Shown here piece by piece: positions 31,999-62,198 of a DNA stretch of 64,000 nucleotides. The position numbers and the translations under genes are program-made. The notes beneath the pieces were generated by a model that made no database searches, was not told where the DNA came from, and saw only the letters and a list, made by a program, of their open reading frames with translations. Where the stretch lies: IMG/VR virus record IMGVR_UViG_3300024239_000011, positions 124,001 to 188,000 of that record. One strand, 5' to 3'. Every line of letters begins with the position of its first letter. Position 1 is the first letter of the stretch.

Positions 31999-32655
31999 TC
32001 ACCAAATCAAATCCTCGACAAAATTCATACCGGATTTCAACCCATTCTTTGGTGGATTGTATCTAACCGTGAATGTGGTTTTTCCCAGGCAACTATCTGG
32101 AAGTCTTATTACTTTGTCTATTAACGGCAAATACACCAAAATAAGATCAATTTCTGCCGCAGAATACGTCAAAACTTTTCCATTTCCATGATCAGACACA
32201 AGGTTGATTACTATACTTCCCTGTGCTTTATCAGATTTTCCGTTTGCGTATTTTACCTGAACTCGCTTTAGTTTCTCGCCATCGTCAAGCACAAAATCAT
32301 AACGAACATCGGTAGTTGGCTTACTCAATACATACCCAAGTTCAGCAGCACGTATTTGGATTTTCAACGCCGCAATTTCACCACGCAAATTAGTGGTAAG
32401 GTTTTCATGCAACGCCTTATGCTCGATCAAACCATATTGTTCGCATCGACGCTGAAAATCATCTGCATTTTTCTTATTCACCGCACGAGCATTTTCTTGC
32501 AAACGAGATTTTAGAATTTCAGCCTGCAATGGATAATCGCGAAGCCAATAACTTGCTGTGCTTTTCGACACATTCAGTTCGGCGGATATTTCTGCCAGTG
32601 ATTTATTCTGTTTACGTAATTCTATTGCTTTTTCTCGTTCCGTTATTTTTGTCAT
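31999..32655 (-). CDS. HTH plus PD-(D/E)XK homing endonuclease
   Basis: RGEIA...RYDFVLD...RVQVK. Confidence 0.85.
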   Translation of the reverse strand: MTKITEREKAIELRKQNKSLAEISAELNVSKSTASYWLRDYPLQAEILKSRLQENARAVNKKNADDFQRRCEQYGLIEHKALHENLTTNLRGEIAALKIQIRAAELGYVLSKPTTDVRYDFVLDDGEKLKRVQVKYANGKSDKAQGSIVINLVSDHGNGKVLTYSAAEIDLILVYLPLIDKVIRLPDSCLGKTTFTVRYNPPKNGLKSGMNFVEDLIW

Positions 32656-32822: not shown

Positions 32823-32908
32823 TGGTTCCGGGAGTAGGAGTCGAACCTACACAGGGCGTTCGCCCCCGCATTCAAAGTGCGGTGTCCTACCAATTAGACG
32901 ATCCCGGA
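32823..32908 (-). tRNA. tRNA-Gln(TTG) with a long variable arm
   Basis: GGGCG-AA-CGCCC variable hairpin; U1-A72, A73. Confidence 0.85.
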
Positions 32909-33085: not shown

Positions 33086-33710
33086 CTATTTCAGCGCCAA
33101 TCGCAGCCGATCAACACCGATAGCCCAACCAATACCTTCAGCGTAGCGTCCGCCACCAGCAACCTGTTTCTGGGCACCAAGCGAGGAAACCTCCACCTCG
33201 AACCCATCTTCGACGTAGTACGTCAGCCCACGTTTCACCGATTCCACGAAGGTGTATTCGACCGGCAACGCATCGAGGCATCGCCGCAACAACTCCGTGA
33301 CTTCTTCCGTGTCCGCTGGACCAGACCCGCCGAGCAGTTCGACCCCAAACTGAGTGAACTCGCGGTACCTTCCCGCTTGGGGGCGCTCGTAGCGATAGCA
33401 CCGGTTACAATAGAACAGGCGCATCGGCTTTTTAGGCTTGATCTTGCTCCATTGGTCCCGATATAGCTCCTGAACCAAGCCAGTCACTTCCGGGATCAAA
33501 CAGACTGGGCGATTGCCCTTATCGTTGAAAGCCCACATCTGGTTTACGATCTCGGGACCAGCCTTATCGATGAAGGTTTGCTGTTCCCAGATTTCCGGAA
33601 GAATTACTTCCTCGAAACCAGCTTCAGTGAACTACCCTCCGAACAGTATCGATGATCATGCGGTATTGACGAGCGTCATCGCCCATCAGGACTTGTGTGC
33701 CTCGCAACAT
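33086..33710 (-). CDS. Minimal histidyl-tRNA synthetase catalytic core, split by a +1 frameshift near 33630
   Basis: MLRGT...RRVV in frame 0 joins TEAGFEEVILP...YRYERPQAGRYREFTQFGVE...RGLTYY...AGGGRY...GWAIGVDRL in the +1 frame. Confidence 0.85.
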
Positions 33711-33735
33711 TGTCTTGCCTTTCGTTTGCGTAGTT

Positions 33736-33812
33736 TGGGGTGGCTGACGGGGTACGATCCCGCAACCTTCGCAGTCACAGTGCGACGCTCTACCAATTGA
33801 GCTACAGCCACC
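33736..33812 (-). tRNA. tRNA-His(GTG) with encoded G-1:C73
   Basis: Cloverleaf, loop CTGTGAC. Confidence 0.93.
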
Positions 33813-33828
33813 ACAGAAATTAAAGAAT

Positions 33829-33921
33829 TGGCGGAAGGGAAGGGACTCGAACCCCCAAACCCCCTTGCGGAGATCAAACACCTTTCCAAGGTGCGCTGTT
33901 CGCCAGTACAGTAGCCCTTCC
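33829..33921 (-). tRNA. tRNA-Ser(GGA)
   Basis: 7/5 cloverleaf, long variable arm, G73. Confidence 0.92.
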
Positions 33922-35104: not shown

Positions 35105-35323
35105 TGGTGGAGGCGAGGGGATTCGAACCCCCGTAGACCGCATAGACCCAAGCATTACCAAGGGCTGGACTTAGGTTTAGAACTTTGGGTGCCCGCTGAC
35201 AGCTTTCGGAAGCCAGAAGGTCGGTCCAAACGAACCCCAAATCCACTTGCGCATGCGTCCCGGTTTTACCCGAGCCGTTGTTCTGTTCCACGGTGCCTAT
35301 GCCGAACTCAGGCGGACGCCCCC
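35105..35323 (-). ncRNA. Short tmRNA-like RNA (219 nt)
   Basis: GGGGGCG/CGCCTCC-ACCA acceptor with G3-U70, T arm, GCATAGGC/GTCTATGC helix, no D stem. Confidence 0.7.
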
Positions 35324-38024: not shown

Positions 38025-38103
38025 TGGGGTGATGAGCCGGATTCGAACCGCGCACCTTCGCTTTCACAGAGCGATATGCAGACACCGCCACACCATCATC
38101 ACC
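38025..38103 (-). tRNA. tRNA-His(GTG) with G-1:C73 and a bulged T stem
   Basis: Loop CTGTGAA, CCA. Confidence 0.82.
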
Positions 38104-50133: not shown

Positions 50134-50287
50134 TGCTATTCGCCATTATGATCCTTTAAAATTAGCCGCATCGCTGGGAGCATGCATTGAATATTCAATG
50201 CTCAAACGCGGCTTTGTTGTTGTTAATTGCCAGTAAACCGCATTTGTGCTAAATAGGTATATACAGAGTATATACCGAGGTCGATCC

Positions 50288-51874
50288 ATGCCAGTATGTT
50301 GCCAAATTTGCGGACAAGAATTTACCAAACAAATTACCAATAGCCATCTTAAGCGTCATAGCATCACCACCGCTGATTATAAGAAGCAATTTGGGGATGA
50401 TTCTCTTTCGTCCCCTGAATACCGCGAACAGAAACGGCAAGCCATATCTGGTTCAAACAACCCGATGTTTGGGCGATCTCAAACCGAGGAATCGCGCCGA
50501 GTGATGTCGGAACGACGGTCTGGGAAACCTGCCCATAATAAGGGCGCGGTGCTTACCGACGCGCAAAAAGATAAACTTCGTGTTCTTGCCCTTGAGCGAA
50601 ATGCTCAATGGGCAGAAAATGGTGATCATCCATTATTGGGGCGCAAGCATTCAGACGAAACGAAAGAACTGATACGTCAGAAACGGGCAGAACAAATTAT
50701 TAGCTCGGAGGCATGTCAACGAGCAGCAATAACTCGCAAGGAACGCGGTTATCAGGCTCCAATGCTTGGCAAGCATCATAGTGAAGAAACAAAAGCTAAA
50801 ATTCTCGTTTCTATGACGGGGTATAGACAAAAAGTAAAAGAACGCACACACCAGAAACGCTTAGACGCAATAGCCAGCTTGAATCTACGATTGATTGATC
50901 ATGATGATCATTTTATGCATTTGGAATGTCTTTGTTGCGGGCATCATTTTCATCGAACCCCACAAGTATTTGATCCATGTCGCATACGTGTAGATATGTG
51001 CGATGTTTGTCATCCTAAAATTAATTACACGAGCAAAGCAGAAACCGAAATTTGTGAATATATAAAGGGATTGCTACCAGATATCGAAGTACGTTCTCGT
51101 GACAAATATGTAATCGGTCGCGGCGAACTAGATATCTATATCCCATCGATGCGTCTTGCCATCGAGTATAACGGTCTGTATTGGCATTCCGAAATTGCTG
51201 GCAAAAGCCGCGATTACCACCTTAACAAATTAGAAAAATGTACCAAAAAAGGGATACGCCTAATTACCATTTTCGAGGATGAATATATGGAAAAACCGCA
51301 TATTGTGCGGAGTAGATTGGCGTCACTTCTTGGAAAAAGTGCCTTTGTTCTTGGTGCGAGAGAATGTGATATCGTTGAGCTATCATCGGCAGAAGCGAAT
51401 TCATTTCTTAAAGAACACCATATCCAAGGCTCGGGTCGAAGCAATGTACGTTATGGTTTAATGTATGATAACGAATTGCTATCCGTAATGACATTTAGTA
51501 AAGATAATTTGTCTCGAAAAATTAATGATTGGGAACTGAATAGATTTGCGTCTAAAACCGACTGGAATATTGCCGGTGCTGCATCTAGACTATTCAAACG
51601 ATTTATTCGCGATCATAATCCTAAACAAATCGTCACATATGCCGACAAACGATGGTCAGAGGGCAACCTATACCATCATCTTGGATTTGTGATGTCGAGA
51701 GACACCGAACCAAATTATTGGTACATTGATGGGTTACGAAGAATTCACCGTTTTGCTCTTCGTAAAAACGACCAAGATGATCCAAATATGACTGAATGGG
51801 AAAATAGAAAAGCACAGGGCTGGAATAGAATCTGGGATTGCGGAAGTATTCGTTTCGATTGGAACGCCATTTAA
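50288..51874 (+). CDS. Hef-like (Vsr-type) homing endonuclease with NUMOD3 repeats
   Basis: NPMFGR/KHSEETK repeats; ELDIYIP..LAIEYNGLYWH; IFEDE; RIWDCG. Confidence 0.85.
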   Translation: MPVCCQICGQEFTKQITNSHLKRHSITTADYKKQFGDDSLSSPEYREQKRQAISGSNNPMFGRSQTEESRRVMSERRSGKPAHNKGAVLTDAQKDKLRVLALERNAQWAENGDHPLLGRKHSDETKELIRQKRAEQIISSEACQRAAITRKERGYQAPMLGKHHSEETKAKILVSMTGYRQKVKERTHQKRLDAIASLNLRLIDHDDHFMHLECLCCGHHFHRTPQVFDPCRIRVDMCDVCHPKINYTSKAETEICEYIKGLLPDIEVRSRDKYVIGRGELDIYIPSMRLAIEYNGLYWHSEIAGKSRDYHLNKLEKCTKKGIRLITIFEDEYMEKPHIVRSRLASLLGKSAFVLGARECDIVELSSAEANSFLKEHHIQGSGRSNVRYGLMYDNELLSVMTFSKDNLSRKINDWELNRFASKTDWNIAGAASRLFKRFIRDHNPKQIVTYADKRWSEGNLYHHLGFVMSRDTEPNYWYIDGLRRIHRFALRKNDQDDPNMTEWENRKAQGWNRIWDCGSIRFDWNAI

Positions 51875-51932: not shown

Positions 51933-54900
51933 TTATCCCATATCCTCACCCGTATTCAAGATACGGATAGGAATATAAATAAATTCAATAGCCTTCACAG
52001 GCTGGATAGCCACATCGATCCATAGTTCGTTACGGTCGATACGTTCCCCAGAGTTATTCGTTTCGTCACAAACCACCACGAAATCATACAGGGCACGCAG
52101 ACCAACAAGATCAGCGAGGAAGCGTTCGAATGTAATACGAACACTGTCACGGGTCTGAAGATCATTCGGCTCGAACAGGAACGGCTTCGCCAGCATTTCC
52201 AACTGATAACGGAGATAGTTGGTTAGACGCGCCACATTAATGCGGTCCATCGCAGTGCTGGTTGGGTTGAGAGTTTTCTGACCATATACAATTAGACCAC
52301 GGTTCGGGATAAACGCGATTGGGTTGATCTTGTTGAGATACAACACGTCACGCTGTCCCTGGTTAAGTAGTACCGGTTTGAATTCTTCCTCACTGGTCAG
52401 ATAACCAGTAGTGGTTGCGTTCGTAACCAGACCACGGTTGTAACCAGCGGGGGCGAACCACTGATATGCTACGGTATCGTTGTACGCCATGGTACGAAGA
52501 GCAATCGTGGACGGCGGTACCATGACTTCGCGACCATCGATGTTGGTTGAAAGACCCCATGGGTAGTACAGACCGACATACGGATTGGCCGTGGTCAGAC
52601 CTTTCTCACCGTTAGACCCGGCAAGATTGGTATTTTGTGCCCAGTTCTGAACTTCAGTTGCATTCGGCTTCATTCGTGCCGGGGTGTCTGCAACAATGAA
52701 TGCCCATTGCTTCTTATCAACGTTCAGAGTGACCAATTCATCGATCACTTCCGCGTAACCCGGTGCAGCGAGCAAGTTGAAGTAAACCTGTTCGCTACGG
52801 AGGTCTTCGTTATTCACGATGGATTCGGCAATTGCCCGAACAATCATGATGCGCTGAGCCTTACGACCCATAAACGGCGAACCGTCAATATCGTTACCAG
52901 AAACAGTAACCCAACGGTTTCCGACCAGACGACCTTCGAAATTGTAGTTCACAACCCATTTCTTCACATTATTAGTGCTATAGCGAGTATTGAACAGGAT
53001 CAGACCGTCTGGGTAACTCAGAGCATCCGGGGCGTCGATATCGACAAAATTGCTGATAAGCATGCTGTTGTAATCTTCATTACCGCTACCGTCATCTTGG
53101 CGTGCATCAGCAAACACAATACCGAACGGGGTGGTCTGGTCGGTATTATCAACAACTTCCCACGAACCGCCCATGTACTTGTAAATTTTAGGGTAGTTCT
53201 CAAGGTCAGCAGTGTCGATCCAAAGATCATTCTCGATAATTGCAGAGCCATTTGGCTTGTACCGTGGTTCGGAACCGCTCAGCATAATATCGGTGCCCGG
53301 ATAACGATTGCGATAACCGAACCACTGAGAACCATTGGACACCATGATGTCCACACGCAGGTTGTTATTGAACCAGAGGGCACCGTTTGCTGGTTCACTG
53401 GTCGGTTCGCCAACGGAACCTTCGTACATCAGGTCTTCCCAATTCATACCGTTCCAGCGGCGAATCGTGTGGGAAGCAGTACCATCAACCGACGTATCGT
53501 ATTGAACATAAACAGTACCAGCCGCCAACGATGAACCCAAATTGGTTAGAGCATCTGCGTCGGAGGCATACAATGGCGCATTCTGGGTCATCCACTGACC
53601 GATTTGCGAGTTATAATATTTGACTACCCAATTCGCGCCCTTATTGGGCTTGGTTGTCTTGATCCACACATCACCAACCGCAGACGGCTTTGGTACTACC
53701 GCATGGGTGGAATAGCTTAATTTATTTCCAAGATAAGTCGTTGCATCAATAGCAAGAACATCAAGAACATTACCACTCTGGCTTGTAAAAGTAATATCTT
53801 CGCCATAAACATTGGTAATGATAAGCTGTGTCCCGGTGGACTGTGCAATAATACCATCCGCTGTCAATGCAGCATCGTTGTTGATCTTAAAGTAGATTTC
53901 ATTGACGGTATCACCCGCATCGACAACAATCTTACGATTACCGGTGCTGGATGCAATTTCAAGCCAACCTGCGTTGAATGCACTAGTGACAACCTTTGAA
54001 ATTACAATAGTAGGGGTTGCCGCTTTCCATTCGGGCGATCCAACCAAGTACCAATGGGCACCTACATCCGGAGTATTTGTCGAAATACCCGACGCATCTT
54101 GCGGAATAAGCTTCTGATAAATGCGGTTATCATTCAGGAAAGTGATGATCGCATAATCACCATTCTTCCCAATATCAGAAGCAGGAAGGAATACATCATG
54201 TTTACCAGTAAACCCAAGCTGTGAAATAATGGTCGCATCACCAGTTATGAAGATGTCCTTACCACGGGTATTGCTGATTTTTAGGTTATACTCAATCCCC
54301 TTGACCTTATTTGGAAGAGTTGTATTTCCACCATTTCCAACAACTGCTGCATTGGCATACATCGACGCCTTGATATTATCGATGTGAGCATTGTTAATTT
54401 TGGAAACAATGCTCAACAGTGTATCACCACTGTTAAGGTTGATGCTCACGCCGTTGATTGTCAAAACACCAGAGGATGAAAGTACCGACTGAGAGGCATG
54501 ATTGGTGATTGCCACCGAAGATGTGCCAACAATCACACGATGAGATACCGCTTCGCTATCGATCAGCTTGACTTGCTTGAAGTCCCATGCCAGACCAGGG
54601 TTATTATTCCCGTTCGATTCAAAAACACCAACGCTTGTCATTCCCAGGTCTAGCCAGTAAGTTCCGTGTACCGGGTTACCACGTGGGGCAACTGCACTTG
54701 GAACAAGCTGACCGAGGTCAATATCTGCACGCACAACATATGCGCGGTCGTTAATACCCAGGTATTGATACAAAGCATGTAGACCATACTCGTTCAATTC
54801 GTACCCGTGCAATGGGGTACCACCCGATGTATAAAACATTGGGTCACCGAAGGTTTGGATGGCTTCGCGCTGCGAAGTCATGAGGTACAGCTTATTCGCC

Positions 54901-55061
54901 TTTGCGTCTAGCGTTCCGGGAGCGATGCCCGTGCCGCTCGGATGTACCTTGTTACTATGAGTGGCGATGAATAGGCACGGAACAGTACCACGGTCGGCAC
55001 CAGCATAGGCGCTTTCGTCCGTAATTGTTACGCTCACACCGGGTGAAGACAAATCTGGCAT
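51933..55061 (-). CDS. Tail sheath protein
   Basis: LSSPGVSVTITDES N-terminus; WFAPAG.NRG, GQKT, DRINVARL, FEPND, VCDETNN, IQPVKAIEFIYI. Confidence 0.96.
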   Translation of the reverse strand: MPDLSSPGVSVTITDESAYAGADRGTVPCLFIATHSNKVHPSGTGIAPGTLDAKANKLYLMTSQREAIQTFGDPMFYTSGGTPLHGYELNEYGLHALYQYLGINDRAYVVRADIDLGQLVPSAVAPRGNPVHGTYWLDLGMTSVGVFESNGNNNPGLAWDFKQVKLIDSEAVSHRVIVGTSSVAITNHASQSVLSSSGVLTINGVSINLNSGDTLLSIVSKINNAHIDNIKASMYANAAVVGNGGNTTLPNKVKGIEYNLKISNTRGKDIFITGDATIISQLGFTGKHDVFLPASDIGKNGDYAIITFLNDNRIYQKLIPQDASGISTNTPDVGAHWYLVGSPEWKAATPTIVISKVVTSAFNAGWLEIASSTGNRKIVVDAGDTVNEIYFKINNDAALTADGIIAQSTGTQLIITNVYGEDITFTSQSGNVLDVLAIDATTYLGNKLSYSTHAVVPKPSAVGDVWIKTTKPNKGANWVVKYYNSQIGQWMTQNAPLYASDADALTNLGSSLAAGTVYVQYDTSVDGTASHTIRRWNGMNWEDLMYEGSVGEPTSEPANGALWFNNNLRVDIMVSNGSQWFGYRNRYPGTDIMLSGSEPRYKPNGSAIIENDLWIDTADLENYPKIYKYMGGSWEVVDNTDQTTPFGIVFADARQDDGSGNEDYNSMLISNFVDIDAPDALSYPDGLILFNTRYSTNNVKKWVVNYNFEGRLVGNRWVTVSGNDIDGSPFMGRKAQRIMIVRAIAESIVNNEDLRSEQVYFNLLAAPGYAEVIDELVTLNVDKKQWAFIVADTPARMKPNATEVQNWAQNTNLAGSNGEKGLTTANPYVGLYYPWGLSTNIDGREVMVPPSTIALRTMAYNDTVAYQWFAPAGYNRGLVTNATTTGYLTSEEEFKPVLLNQGQRDVLYLNKINPIAFIPNRGLIVYGQKTLNPTSTAMDRINVARLTNYLRYQLEMLAKPFLFEPNDLQTRDSVRITFERFLADLVGLRALYDFVVVCDETNNSGERIDRNELWIDVAIQPVKAIEFIYIPIRILNTGEDMG

Positions 55062-55421
55062 ATCTATACCCCTTTTTACGAAATTCTCTGATTGCAACAG
55101 CCTGTTTTGCATAGGTATTTATGATCACCCCCCGCCTTTGGCGTCCCAACAGGGTAAAAAGAAAGGCGAGGATTTTCTTTCCTCGCCTTAGTGATTGATG
55201 TATTTGATACTTTTCGTGTTTTTCGAACGCGGTTTGTCTAGTATTTGTGATTAAATCTAGTATCAGTTGATAGTAGAGGTACCACCCAACACCCTTTAGT
55301 GACCGGTGCTAGAAATTTTTTTCACTAAAAGAGAATGGGCAGATCACGGACCTATCTGCCCATAATCTGCCCATAACTCATCTGATTGAGATTTACCGTT
55401 ATATAGAAAACGTAAATTGAA

Positions 55422-60887: not shown

Positions 60888-62198
60888 TTATGTAATATTG
60901 TGGTTTCTCTTCGCCGCAGCCAATCTATAATTCGCTTTATGTTCCTCGGTACGTACTTTTCCCTTATTAGACTCACTCATCTTACGACGCCGTTCTCTCG
61001 CCTTTTCAACTCCATAAATTTCTTCGTATGTCTTACCACGCATATTTTCACCACGTTTCTGTGCTGCTGCTTTTATTCTCTCACGTGTTTCATCCGAGAT
61101 AGCACGATTGTGCATTGCCTCCCTAACCCGTTGTTTGGATTCTTCGGTCCACCCTTTTCGCACACGCTTCCATTTCCCCCATCCACGAATTTCTGCTTGT
61201 TTATTAAGATAGCGGGTGGAAATACCATACATCGCAGATAACTCTTTCTGGGGTATTTCACCAGCACGGTATAAAGGTTCAACTTCCTCCCAATTTACGA
61301 CAACCACTTCTTTTGGCGGTTTACGAGTATGCGTAGGTGGAGTTTGCCGTCCCGCCTCATAATCAAAATACAATTCCTCAATAGTTTTATGACAATCACT
61401 ACCTTTACTACTATTATCACTAATAGTGAGCATTCGCAGATTAGTCCAATGACCTATAATCTCAGGTGGGATATTGTTTCTAAAACCTTCTAATATACTG
61501 TAGATATGGTCAAGATGCCAGTATGAACCACGCTTATGACGTTCAGGATTAATCTTGTCGAAATAATCAATCCATGATTTTCGAGTGATTTCATATACAG
61601 CCGCATAATACAAATCACGTTCTTCCGTTTTTGGTTCCGCATTTCCGTTGGCAATCCGCGTTTCAAGAGACTTTTTTATAATGTCAGGGTGTTTCCATGG
61701 GTGATCGACACCGTACTTGTCCAGCCACGTTTGACGAAGTTTCTCCCTCCTATCGTCGTCCCATTGACATCCTGTGCGTTTGTGATTGCCATTTATTCTG
61801 CCTTCATTATATATCGTAAGATAATGCGCATACCCATCTTCATTATCTTTCGAATGCCAATGAGTATGACCGGTACGTTGACAATACGTTTCCATACGTT
61901 GCTTAACAAATTGTGGATCAGACGATTTTGCCGACCGTGAAAAATAAGTCAAATATCGGTTCTCAAACCATTTGACAAACTCGCCGGTCACTGGACAAAC
62001 AGGACGGTCATAAACCTCATTGATGATGTGCCACACCCGCTGTTTTGGTTTGGCATCATCAGGAAGAAATGCTGTTATCTGACAAATTTCTTCCCATAAA
62101 TCAGGATCGCGTTTGGATAAATACCGAATAGCAGACCGATTGTTATAGCCATTTTCGTATTGCGCAAGATATGCGGACAATTTTGCAAGAACATCCAT
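60888..62198 (-). CDS. HNH/NUMOD3-type homing endonuclease
   Basis: KYGVDHP, HLDHIYS...NLRML...N..K, NUMOD3-like C-terminus. Confidence 0.75.
   Translation of the reverse strand: MDVLAKLSAYLAQYENGYNNRSAIRYLSKRDPDLWEEICQITAFLPDDAKPKQRVWHIINEVYDRPVCPVTGEFVKWFENRYLTYFSRSAKSSDPQFVKQRMETYCQRTGHTHWHSKDNEDGYAHYLTIYNEGRINGNHKRTGCQWDDDRREKLRQTWLDKYGVDHPWKHPDIIKKSLETRIANGNAEPKTEERDLYYAAVYEITRKSWIDYFDKINPERHKRGSYWHLDHIYSILEGFRNNIPPEIIGHWTNLRMLTISDNSSKGSDCHKTIEELYFDYEAGRQTPPTHTRKPPKEVVVVNWEEVEPLYRAGEIPQKELSAMYGISTRYLNKQAEIRGWGKWKRVRKGWTEESKQRVREAMHNRAISDETRERIKAAAQKRGENMRGKTYEEIYGVEKARERRRKMSESNKGKVRTEEHKANYRLAAAKRNHNIT

Follow-up and report, generated by a model that had tools for sequence, protein, structure and literature searches.

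Downstream of a tRNA-His gene lies a gene for a histidyl-tRNA synthetase (HisRS) of about half the usual size, interrupted by a change of reading frame, and it raises the question of what its product is and how it comes to be made. It was found on the minus strand (33086-33710) of the window, i.e. the whole stretch of 64,000 nucleotides (nt) considered here (positions 124,001 to 188,000 of IMG/VR record IMGVR_UViG_3300024239_000011). This window is part of a single virus sequence of 543,035 bp, which was judged complete. The strongest feature of this minimal HisRS (mini-HisRS) gene is a conserved +1 frameshift site resembling that of prfB and located at a histidine codon, which was unreported in the literature searched. 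On balance we favour the reading that the enzyme is produced through a feedback frameshift at this codon and that, in a host devoid of G-1, it would form a private pair with the tRNA-His of the phage.

The zero frame starts with an ATG at 33710 and encompasses 28 codons (M1-H28) before being closed by a TGA at 33624-33626. This piece (33624-33710) was delineated by translation, and unbroken relatives have N-termini homologous to it. The +1 frame stays open from 33631 up to a stop at 33086-33088 (181 codons) and encodes the body of the protein, residues 29-207 (33086-33631), as recognised with the hisS profile, HisRS structures, a fold model, Foldseek and the family alignment. Both frames meet in a cassette (33624-33640) reading GGAGGG-UA-GUU-CAC-UGA, the design of which is shared by 32 distinct genes. 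It consists of a Shine-Dalgarno (SD)-like GGAGGG (33635-33640) placed two nt upstream of GUU (33630-33632, P site), followed by CAC (33627-33629, zero-frame A site) and UGA (33624-33626). Skipping one base yields a protein of exactly 207 amino acids (aa), 28 from the zero frame and 179 from the +1 frame (P0001), which is the length of unbroken relatives. The initial annotation had assumed a joined protein of about 207 aa; the join is real and set by this conserved break, which had been overlooked. P0001 was translated with CACT read as histidine for convenience, while the favoured model puts threonine instead of histidine at residue 28.

The locus displays what is expected from a site of the prfB type: a conserved protein spread over two frames offset by +1, little overlap between these and no other start. 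A TAG in the +1 frame immediately precedes its first codon, TTC (33629-33631). As this frame is closed until the codon overlapping GUU, the shift is confined to GUA, GUU or CAC. No ATG, GTG or TTG was found in the +1 frame of the window before residue 58, which rules out an internal start for the body. Slippage during transcription of the G run was likewise rejected: many members are devoid of such a run, and the window gene has the TAG just mentioned. Decoding of CACU in one step by a tRNA-His with an anticodon loop of eight nt was also discarded, both tRNA-His of the window having ordinary loops of seven nt.

Scans of viral, metagenome and genome collections provided 32 distinct genes with the break, the window gene included. 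The last zero-frame codon before the break was CUU in 23 and GUU in nine of them, and the following codon always specified histidine (CAU in 26, CAC in six). The shift-prone arrangement NUU-C was thus encountered in 32 out of 32 genes, although the GUU of the window re-pairs less well than CUU. The zero-frame codon following histidine was UGA in 18 genes, UAA in one, CGA in seven and another one in the remaining six (CCC and CUC among them). The +1 codon read after the slip was AUU (14), AUC (12), ACU (five) or ACG (one). SD-like elements (GGAGG, GAGGU, AGGUG or GGAG, with a match of at least four nt) were present two to six nt upstream of NUU in 26 of the 32 genes, and three more displayed GGGGG. 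None of seven unbroken relatives from the same clade displayed an SD-like element or NUU at the aligned place. Phosso, a phage infecting Sinorhizobium meliloti and the closest isolate with the same gene, is broken at the same codon, with CUU-CAU-C instead of the GUU-CAC-U of the window. Its record annotates just a piece of 196 aa starting at an internal ATG.

Three break positions could be distinguished. Most genes were broken at codons 27/28 (site i), three others (L024, L025 and L050) at codons ~19/20, that is eight to nine codons earlier (site ii), and one (L023) at codons 71/72, within the C-L-I-P-E of the HisA motif (site iii). All three sites share the hexamer CUU-CAU and, at sites ii and iii, CUU-CAU-C is preceded by an SD-like element. 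In a maximum-likelihood tree, site i was ancestral to a large clade with unbroken forms nested inside, site iii was found beside unbroken sisters and site ii belonged to the other main clade. As the three positions are separate on the tree, the device arose three or more times and disappeared on several occasions.

The family itself is large. A word search gathered 2321 relatives of 118-376 aa, the best 120 of which were mostly near 210 aa (range ~175-300). Among these 120, relatives bearing JGI names were called histidyl-tRNA synthetase, and several were short at the N-terminus, as broken gene calls would be. The gene was found in tRNA arrays, often at 1.5 kb or less from a tRNA-His gene, and it was unbroken in two AT-rich huge phages (L002 and L003). 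Copies with the CUU-CAU frameshift were also encountered on the chromosomes of Pseudomonas cerasi (L122), Pseudomonas sp. Au-Pse12 (L123), Paraburkholderia aspalathi (L124) and P. caffeinilytica (L126), with no tRNA nearby. The neighbours of these chromosomal copies are unrelated genes (GNAT acetyltransferase, YfcE phosphodiesterase, isochorismatase-like and pirin-like genes), and their motif-3 arginine is replaced by alanine, with an arginine two residues further on.

Sites ii and iii are informative about the codon on which the ribosome would slip. There, a slip on CUU with AUC read next brings back a family-conserved isoleucine (I-D and C-L-I-P-E, respectively), whereas decoding histidine first would displace it. 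At the position of site i, unbroken relatives display I, T, V, K or R, and never histidine. A shift after histidine, with the stop or CGA as slow codon, is disfavoured by this restored isoleucine, by the invariant UU before CAY, by the spacing of the SD-like element and by the variability of the next codon. In our reading of these sequences, the slip would take place on NUU and not after histidine.

The tRNAs with anticodons GAG (Leu) and GAC (Val) are both encoded by the phage. With the A site empty at CAY, the peptidyl-tRNA (GAG for Leu, GAC for Val) would re-pair from NUU to UUC, and the SD-like element 2-4 nt upstream would assist this +1 slip. When His-tRNA is plentiful, the histidine codon would be decoded and translation would immediately stop at UGA, leaving no full-length synthetase. 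When it is scarce, a pause at the histidine codon would favour the slip and the synthetase would be made. Full-length mini-HisRS would be produced exclusively by a +1 slip at GUU-CAC, in a feedback loop that follows the logic of prfB with charged tRNA-His as signal. Such feedback is suggested by the break being at a histidine codon in a gene whose product would make His-tRNA, and the frameshift site looks like a built-in sensor of charged tRNA-His.

The +1 shifts of prfB, the gene for release factor RF2, and of the yeast element Ty1 both proceed by a slip of peptidyl-tRNA next to a slow A site (reviewed in PMC5009743). In prfB (AGGGGG-UAU-CUU-UGA-C), an SD-like element is situated ~3 nt before CUU, as in the mini-HisRS family. 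The two systems also share a short zero-frame open reading frame (ORF) followed by a long +1 body, and the A-site codon of mini-HisRS may, like that of prfB, be a slow one tied to the line of its own product. The members closest in wording are L043 (AGGGAG-UAU-CUU-CAU-UGA) and L004 (AGGGGG-UUG-GUU-CAC-UGA). The A site of prfB contains a stop codon, while that of mini-HisRS contains a sense codon for histidine, and the signal would be a charged tRNA. Further differences are that the gene encodes a synthetase, that GUU replaces CUU in nine of 32 genes and that the site has arisen at several places. The CUU-AGG-C of Ty1 and ABP140 similarly involves a slip from CUU to the overlapping UUN, with a sense codon in the A site awaiting a scarce tRNA (PMC5009743). 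These cases are eukaryotic, devoid of an SD-like stimulator, and their products do not feed back on the scarce tRNA.

The protein itself is related to HisRS. Its +1-frame body (181 codons) matched the hisS profile TIGR00442 with an E-value of 1e-38 and 133.5 bits; the curated cut-off of 286.75 was not reached because the insertion and anticodon-binding domains are absent. The hisZ profile TIGR00443 gave 82.2 bits, below both its cut-off (271.65) and the hisS score, and the enzyme was hence considered HisRS-like and not HisZ-like, as initially annotated. Among solved structures, HisRS was matched with an E-value of 2e-26, the best being those of Thermus thermophilus, Staphylococcus aureus and Escherichia coli. 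The alignment to the T. thermophilus structures (1ADJ/4RDX) fell into two stretches, skipped residues ~157-225 (insertion domain) and stopped at motif 3. A search of PHROGs retrieved just a weak match to phrog_4806 ('histidyl tRNA synthetase', E-value 0.0045). Class II motifs 1 to 3 and the HisRS-specific histidine-binding motifs are present on a HisRS-like fold. They comprise, besides the motif 1 strand, HisA (L71-T76, 33482-33499), motif 2 (residues 100-124, 33338-33412), HisB (R160-Y165) and motif 3 (residues 185-204, 33098-33157).

The initial annotation had the protein ending just after motif 3, without an anticodon-binding domain, and this was confirmed here by the structure alignment: only three residues follow. 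No ORF for such a domain was found downstream of the gene in the window, the next feature being a tRNA-Gln gene (32823-32908). The domain was also sought as a separate ORF: there was none in the window, and the ORF located 3' of the Phosso gene is not conserved here.

The joined protein, modelled by AlphaFold2 with 22 relatives, displayed a mean predicted local distance difference test (pLDDT) value of 92.7 and a predicted template modelling (pTM) score of 0.89. Foldseek matched it to the HisRS catalytic domain with template modelling (TM) scores of 0.89-0.91 by query length and ~0.5 by target length. The top 22 matches were all HisRS, followed by HisZ, PylRS and SepRS. In the family alignment (A1), E74, T76, R106, Q111, R114, F118, Q120 and E124 were invariant, and E108, R116 and R160 nearly so. 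In E. coli numbering, E74, T76, R106, E108, Q111, R114, R116 and R160 correspond to E83, T85, R113, E115, Q118, R121, R123 and R259, respectively. The residues conserved in the family are those binding histidine, ATP and the 3' end of the tRNA. The residues of the motif-2 loop that contact the acceptor end in canonical HisRS were kept, including the glutamine of ERPQ, invariant family-wide.

An unbroken relative (P0002) modelled as a homodimer scored 0.85, against 0.00 for the best control; 21 of 30 solved pairs and none of 23 solved single chains attained this mark. All contacts (100 %) agreed between runs, pLDDT was at least 87 and the interface involved residues 1-17, 24 and 33-42, although HisRS dimers remembered by the model may account for part of the score. 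As the interface includes residues 1-17, the segment encoded before the frame break (33624-33710), which forms the N-terminal helix preceding motif 1, belongs to the fold. According to these models, the protein is a class II catalytic core only and probably acts as a homodimer.

Mini-HisRS has the catalytic fold, motifs 1 to 3, HisA, HisB and the motif-2 glutamine in common with canonical HisRS (E. coli 1KMM, T. thermophilus 1ADJ/4RDX). It is about half as large and lacks both the insertion domain (T. thermophilus residues 172-228) and the anticodon-binding domain (331-421), and its loop past the motif-3 GGGRY is shorter. HisZ, a paralogue of HisRS, is likewise devoid of an anticodon-binding domain. 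HisZ is larger (310-390 aa) and keeps the insertion region, while mini-HisRS keeps the catalytic residues. HisRS fragments and urzymes without an anticodon-binding domain were reportedly designed by Augustine and Francklyn (1997) and by Li, Francklyn and Carter (2011-2013), and are said to have retained histidine activation and tRNA acylation. These were laboratory constructs, whereas mini-HisRS is a natural and widespread family.

Several points count against the favoured reading, that of a feedback-controlled synthetase. At the P site of the window, re-pairing of GUU with UUC leaves a mismatch at the first position, and GUU should therefore slip less readily than CUU. Sense codons in the A site are usually decoded quickly, and basal frameshifting may be very low. 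The choice of histidine may be partly forced, since only C or U as the next base suits G34 of the slipping tRNA, and the codons that come after specify Ile or Thr. The whole frameshift mechanism was, moreover, derived from sequence alone. Concerning the enzyme, the hisS score of 133 bits fell far short of the curated cut-off of 287. Many relatives have K, T, S, P, A or E instead of the motif-3 arginine (R188 in the window; A1), so that the usual mode of histidine activation may be lacking in some of them. Also absent is the insertion domain, by which the acceptor stem is clamped in the T. thermophilus complex (PMC4357726).

The alternative that survives best, though we consider it unlikely, is that the frameshift is real and required but acts as a fixed throttle, maintaining a low and constant output of synthetase, with the histidine codon as a by-product of slip chemistry. 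CAY would arise easily, given that the slipping tRNAs (GAG and GAC) require a following C or U and that the +1 codons specify Ile or Thr. The stop found right after histidine in 19 of 32 genes would suit a simple terminate-or-shift switch. Yet CAY was encountered at all three independent sites, for which a rough estimate, assuming that the inserted base is C or U and that the next codon is free, gave ~1/16 per event and ~2e-4 overall. Besides, the product of the gene would make the very molecule that decodes this codon, and the codon following histidine is not conserved.

Less probable still is that mini-HisRS is no tRNA synthetase, but regulates in the manner of HisZ or adenylates histidine for another acceptor, comparable to other truncated synthetase paralogues. 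The missing insertion and anticodon-binding domains, the sub-cut-off hisS score, the matches to hisZ models and the loss of the motif-3 arginine in many relatives could be so understood, as could the Pseudomonas and Paraburkholderia copies, which reside among unrelated genes without a nearby tRNA. However, the hisS score of 133 bits is well above the 82 bits of hisZ, and residues contacting His-AMP, A76, C74 and the G-1:C73 end (PMC4357726) are invariant or nearly so. In many phages the gene adjoins tRNA-His within tRNA arrays, and a frameshift at a histidine codon is most sensible for an enzyme producing His-tRNA. That the gene is broken, wrongly assembled or a decaying pseudogene, as the two pieces given by NCBI-style gene callers and the 196-aa annotation in Phosso might suggest, is very improbable: contigs from three further samples span 33234-33886 without indel and are identical at the break site, 31 other distinct genes, including those of an isolate genome and of cultured bacteria, have the same design with a specific hexamer at three positions, and non-synonymous change (0.25-0.38 in the first 27 codons, 0.13-0.34 in the body) was far below the saturated synonymous change (0.45-0.92) in both pieces, so that the gene is not a pseudogene.

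The partner of the feedback-controlled synthetase favoured here would be the tRNA-His encoded next to it. This gene (33736-33811 with G-1 at 33812, minus strand) was detected by ARAGORN and by the Rfam tRNA model (65.5 bits), and its sequence was inspected. It displays anticodon GUG, seven acceptor pairs, a genomic G-1, discriminator C73 and an encoded CCA. The ATG of the synthetase gene (33710) is located 25 nt past its 3' end, on the same strand. A second tRNA-His(GUG) gene (38025-38102 with G-1 at 38103, minus strand; ARAGORN and Rfam) also displays G-1, C73 and an encoded CCA, and has a larger D loop. Both had been described in the initial annotation, and both have the design of E. coli tRNA-His, in which G-1 pairs with C73. 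As nothing in the protein could read an anticodon, the enzyme would recognise tRNA-His through the acceptor end (G-1:C73).

Such a pair could be private in certain hosts. Rhodobacteraceae, Rhizobiales, Caulobacterales and Hyphomonadaceae have a tRNA-His without G-1 and with A73, and in the HisRS of this alphaproteobacterial (RRCH) clade the glutamine of the motif-2 loop is replaced by glycine (PMC3937112). HisRS from Caulobacter crescentus recognises U72, A73 and the anticodon; with E. coli tRNA-His, its charging drops by a factor of more than 250 (PMC3064791). HisRS and tRNA-His from E. coli are orthogonal as a pair in Caulobacter in vivo (PMC3875453). The initial annotation had likewise referred to alphaproteobacterial orders without G-1 whose HisRS relies on the anticodon. 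The phage combines G-1:C73 tRNAs with an enzyme whose motif-2 loop is of the canonical G-1:C73 type, glutamine included. In a G-1-less alphaproteobacterial host, this enzyme and the phage tRNA-His would constitute a private pair.

Four close relatives (L007, L010, L011 and L016) carry a tRNA-His of the alphaproteobacterial type, without G-1 and with G1:U72, G37 and A73 (U73 in L007). Two of them, L007 and L010, have a G-1:C73 tRNA-His beside mini-HisRS as well, and hence both kinds. A G-1-less tRNA-His being useful only in a host of that clade, a private pair is plausible for this phage group on the basis of its sequences. The idea is limited by the window phage having tRNA-His copies of the G-1 kind only. 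Moreover, the domain-less enzyme was also found in phages unlinked to G-1-less hosts and on Pseudomonas and Paraburkholderia chromosomes, whose hosts possess G-1. Its presence alongside G-1-using hosts makes the absence of the anticodon-binding domain a trait of the family and not an adaptation to G-1-less hosts. The acceptor-stem-reading private pair initially proposed is supported in part, by the HisRS-like nature of the enzyme, the loop glutamine, the G-1:C73 tRNAs, the relatives with both tRNA kinds and the Sinorhizobium meliloti host of Phosso, and is limited by the presence of the same enzyme family in G-1-using hosts. A comparable situation was engineered with the E. coli pair in Caulobacter, where a G-1-reading enzyme and its G-1:C73 tRNA function beside the host pair based on A73, U72 and the anticodon (PMC3064791, PMC3875453). 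The phage pair would, by contrast, be a natural one.

Full-text literature searches found no work dealing with Phosso, with frameshifted synthetase genes or with jumbo-phage HisRS, and no synthetase gene with programmed frameshifting was found in a recoding review from 2016 (PMC5009743). We give about even chances to this being the first synthetase gene controlled through programmed +1 frameshifting at its cognate codon, a device with three or more origins in a minimal, acceptor-stem-only HisRS family spread through giant phages and some proteobacterial chromosomes. If true, it would join prfB as a second autoregulatory +1 frameshift of bacterial type, signalled by a sense codon and a charged tRNA. 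A natural HisRS core of ~200 residues would offer a model for acceptor-stem-only synthetases, of relevance to work on minimal synthetases and urzymes, and the private pair would be a natural example of two tRNA-His identity systems within one cell. For annotation, gene callers shorten these genes or label them broken. The culturable Pseudomonas and Paraburkholderia copies and the isolated Sinorhizobium phage make the proposal directly testable.

The virus, a jumbo phage, has 66 tRNA genes, of which 27 are within the window and nearly all on the minus strand. The array spans 7582-48508 (minus strand) in the window and 77.5-172.5 kb in the genome. Several of the tRNA genes are 85-94 nt long. The set includes none for Asp or Glu; in the window, Leu, Pro, Gln, His and Ser isoacceptors occur clustered. 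The tail sheath protein (51933-55112) displayed full-length matches to those of Sinorhizobium phage Phosso (48.9 %) and Agrobacterium phage Atu_ph07 (46.3 %), and only partial ones to other jumbo phages. Together with the G-1-less tRNA-His genes of relatives, this nearness is indirect evidence for a host from the G-1-less clade. DNA of the phage was present in several samples from one subsurface-metagenome study. As a host marker, tRNA-Tyr was discarded: it has C7 and U8, i.e. one of the two alphaproteobacterial marks of PMC3937112, and is too weak to use.

Some additional features were noticed in this genome. A second truncated class II synthetase-like gene (genome 211324-212178, plus strand, outside the window) encodes 284 aa in an unbroken frame, directly 3' of a DNA methyltransferase-like ORF. 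Its best match was glycine--tRNA ligase (E-value 5.5e-15, far under the cut-off). ARAGORN also detected, at genome 96422-96505 (minus strand, outside the window), a tRNA with a four-base anticodon (ctta), possibly a quadruplet or suppressor-like tRNA or else a miscall. Amid the tRNA genes of the window, an ORF of 218 aa (31999-32655, minus strand) displayed a helix-turn-helix-like N-terminus and matched phrog_5018, of unknown function (E-value 3e-14). ORFs resembling homing endonucleases and HNH proteins (50246-51874, plus strand, and 60888-62198, minus strand; phrog_3339 and phrog_559, E-values down to 2e-99) adjoin the tail sheath gene. Finally, an RNA of 219 nt (35105-35323, minus strand) is probably a compact phage tmRNA. 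It displays a T arm, CCA and an acceptor stem resembling that of tRNA-Ala (G3:U70), matched the Rfam tmRNA model with an E-value of 6e-10 (28 bits, below the gathering score of 47) and is 78 % identical to unannotated DNA located in tRNA arrays of seven Brevundimonas jumbo phages.
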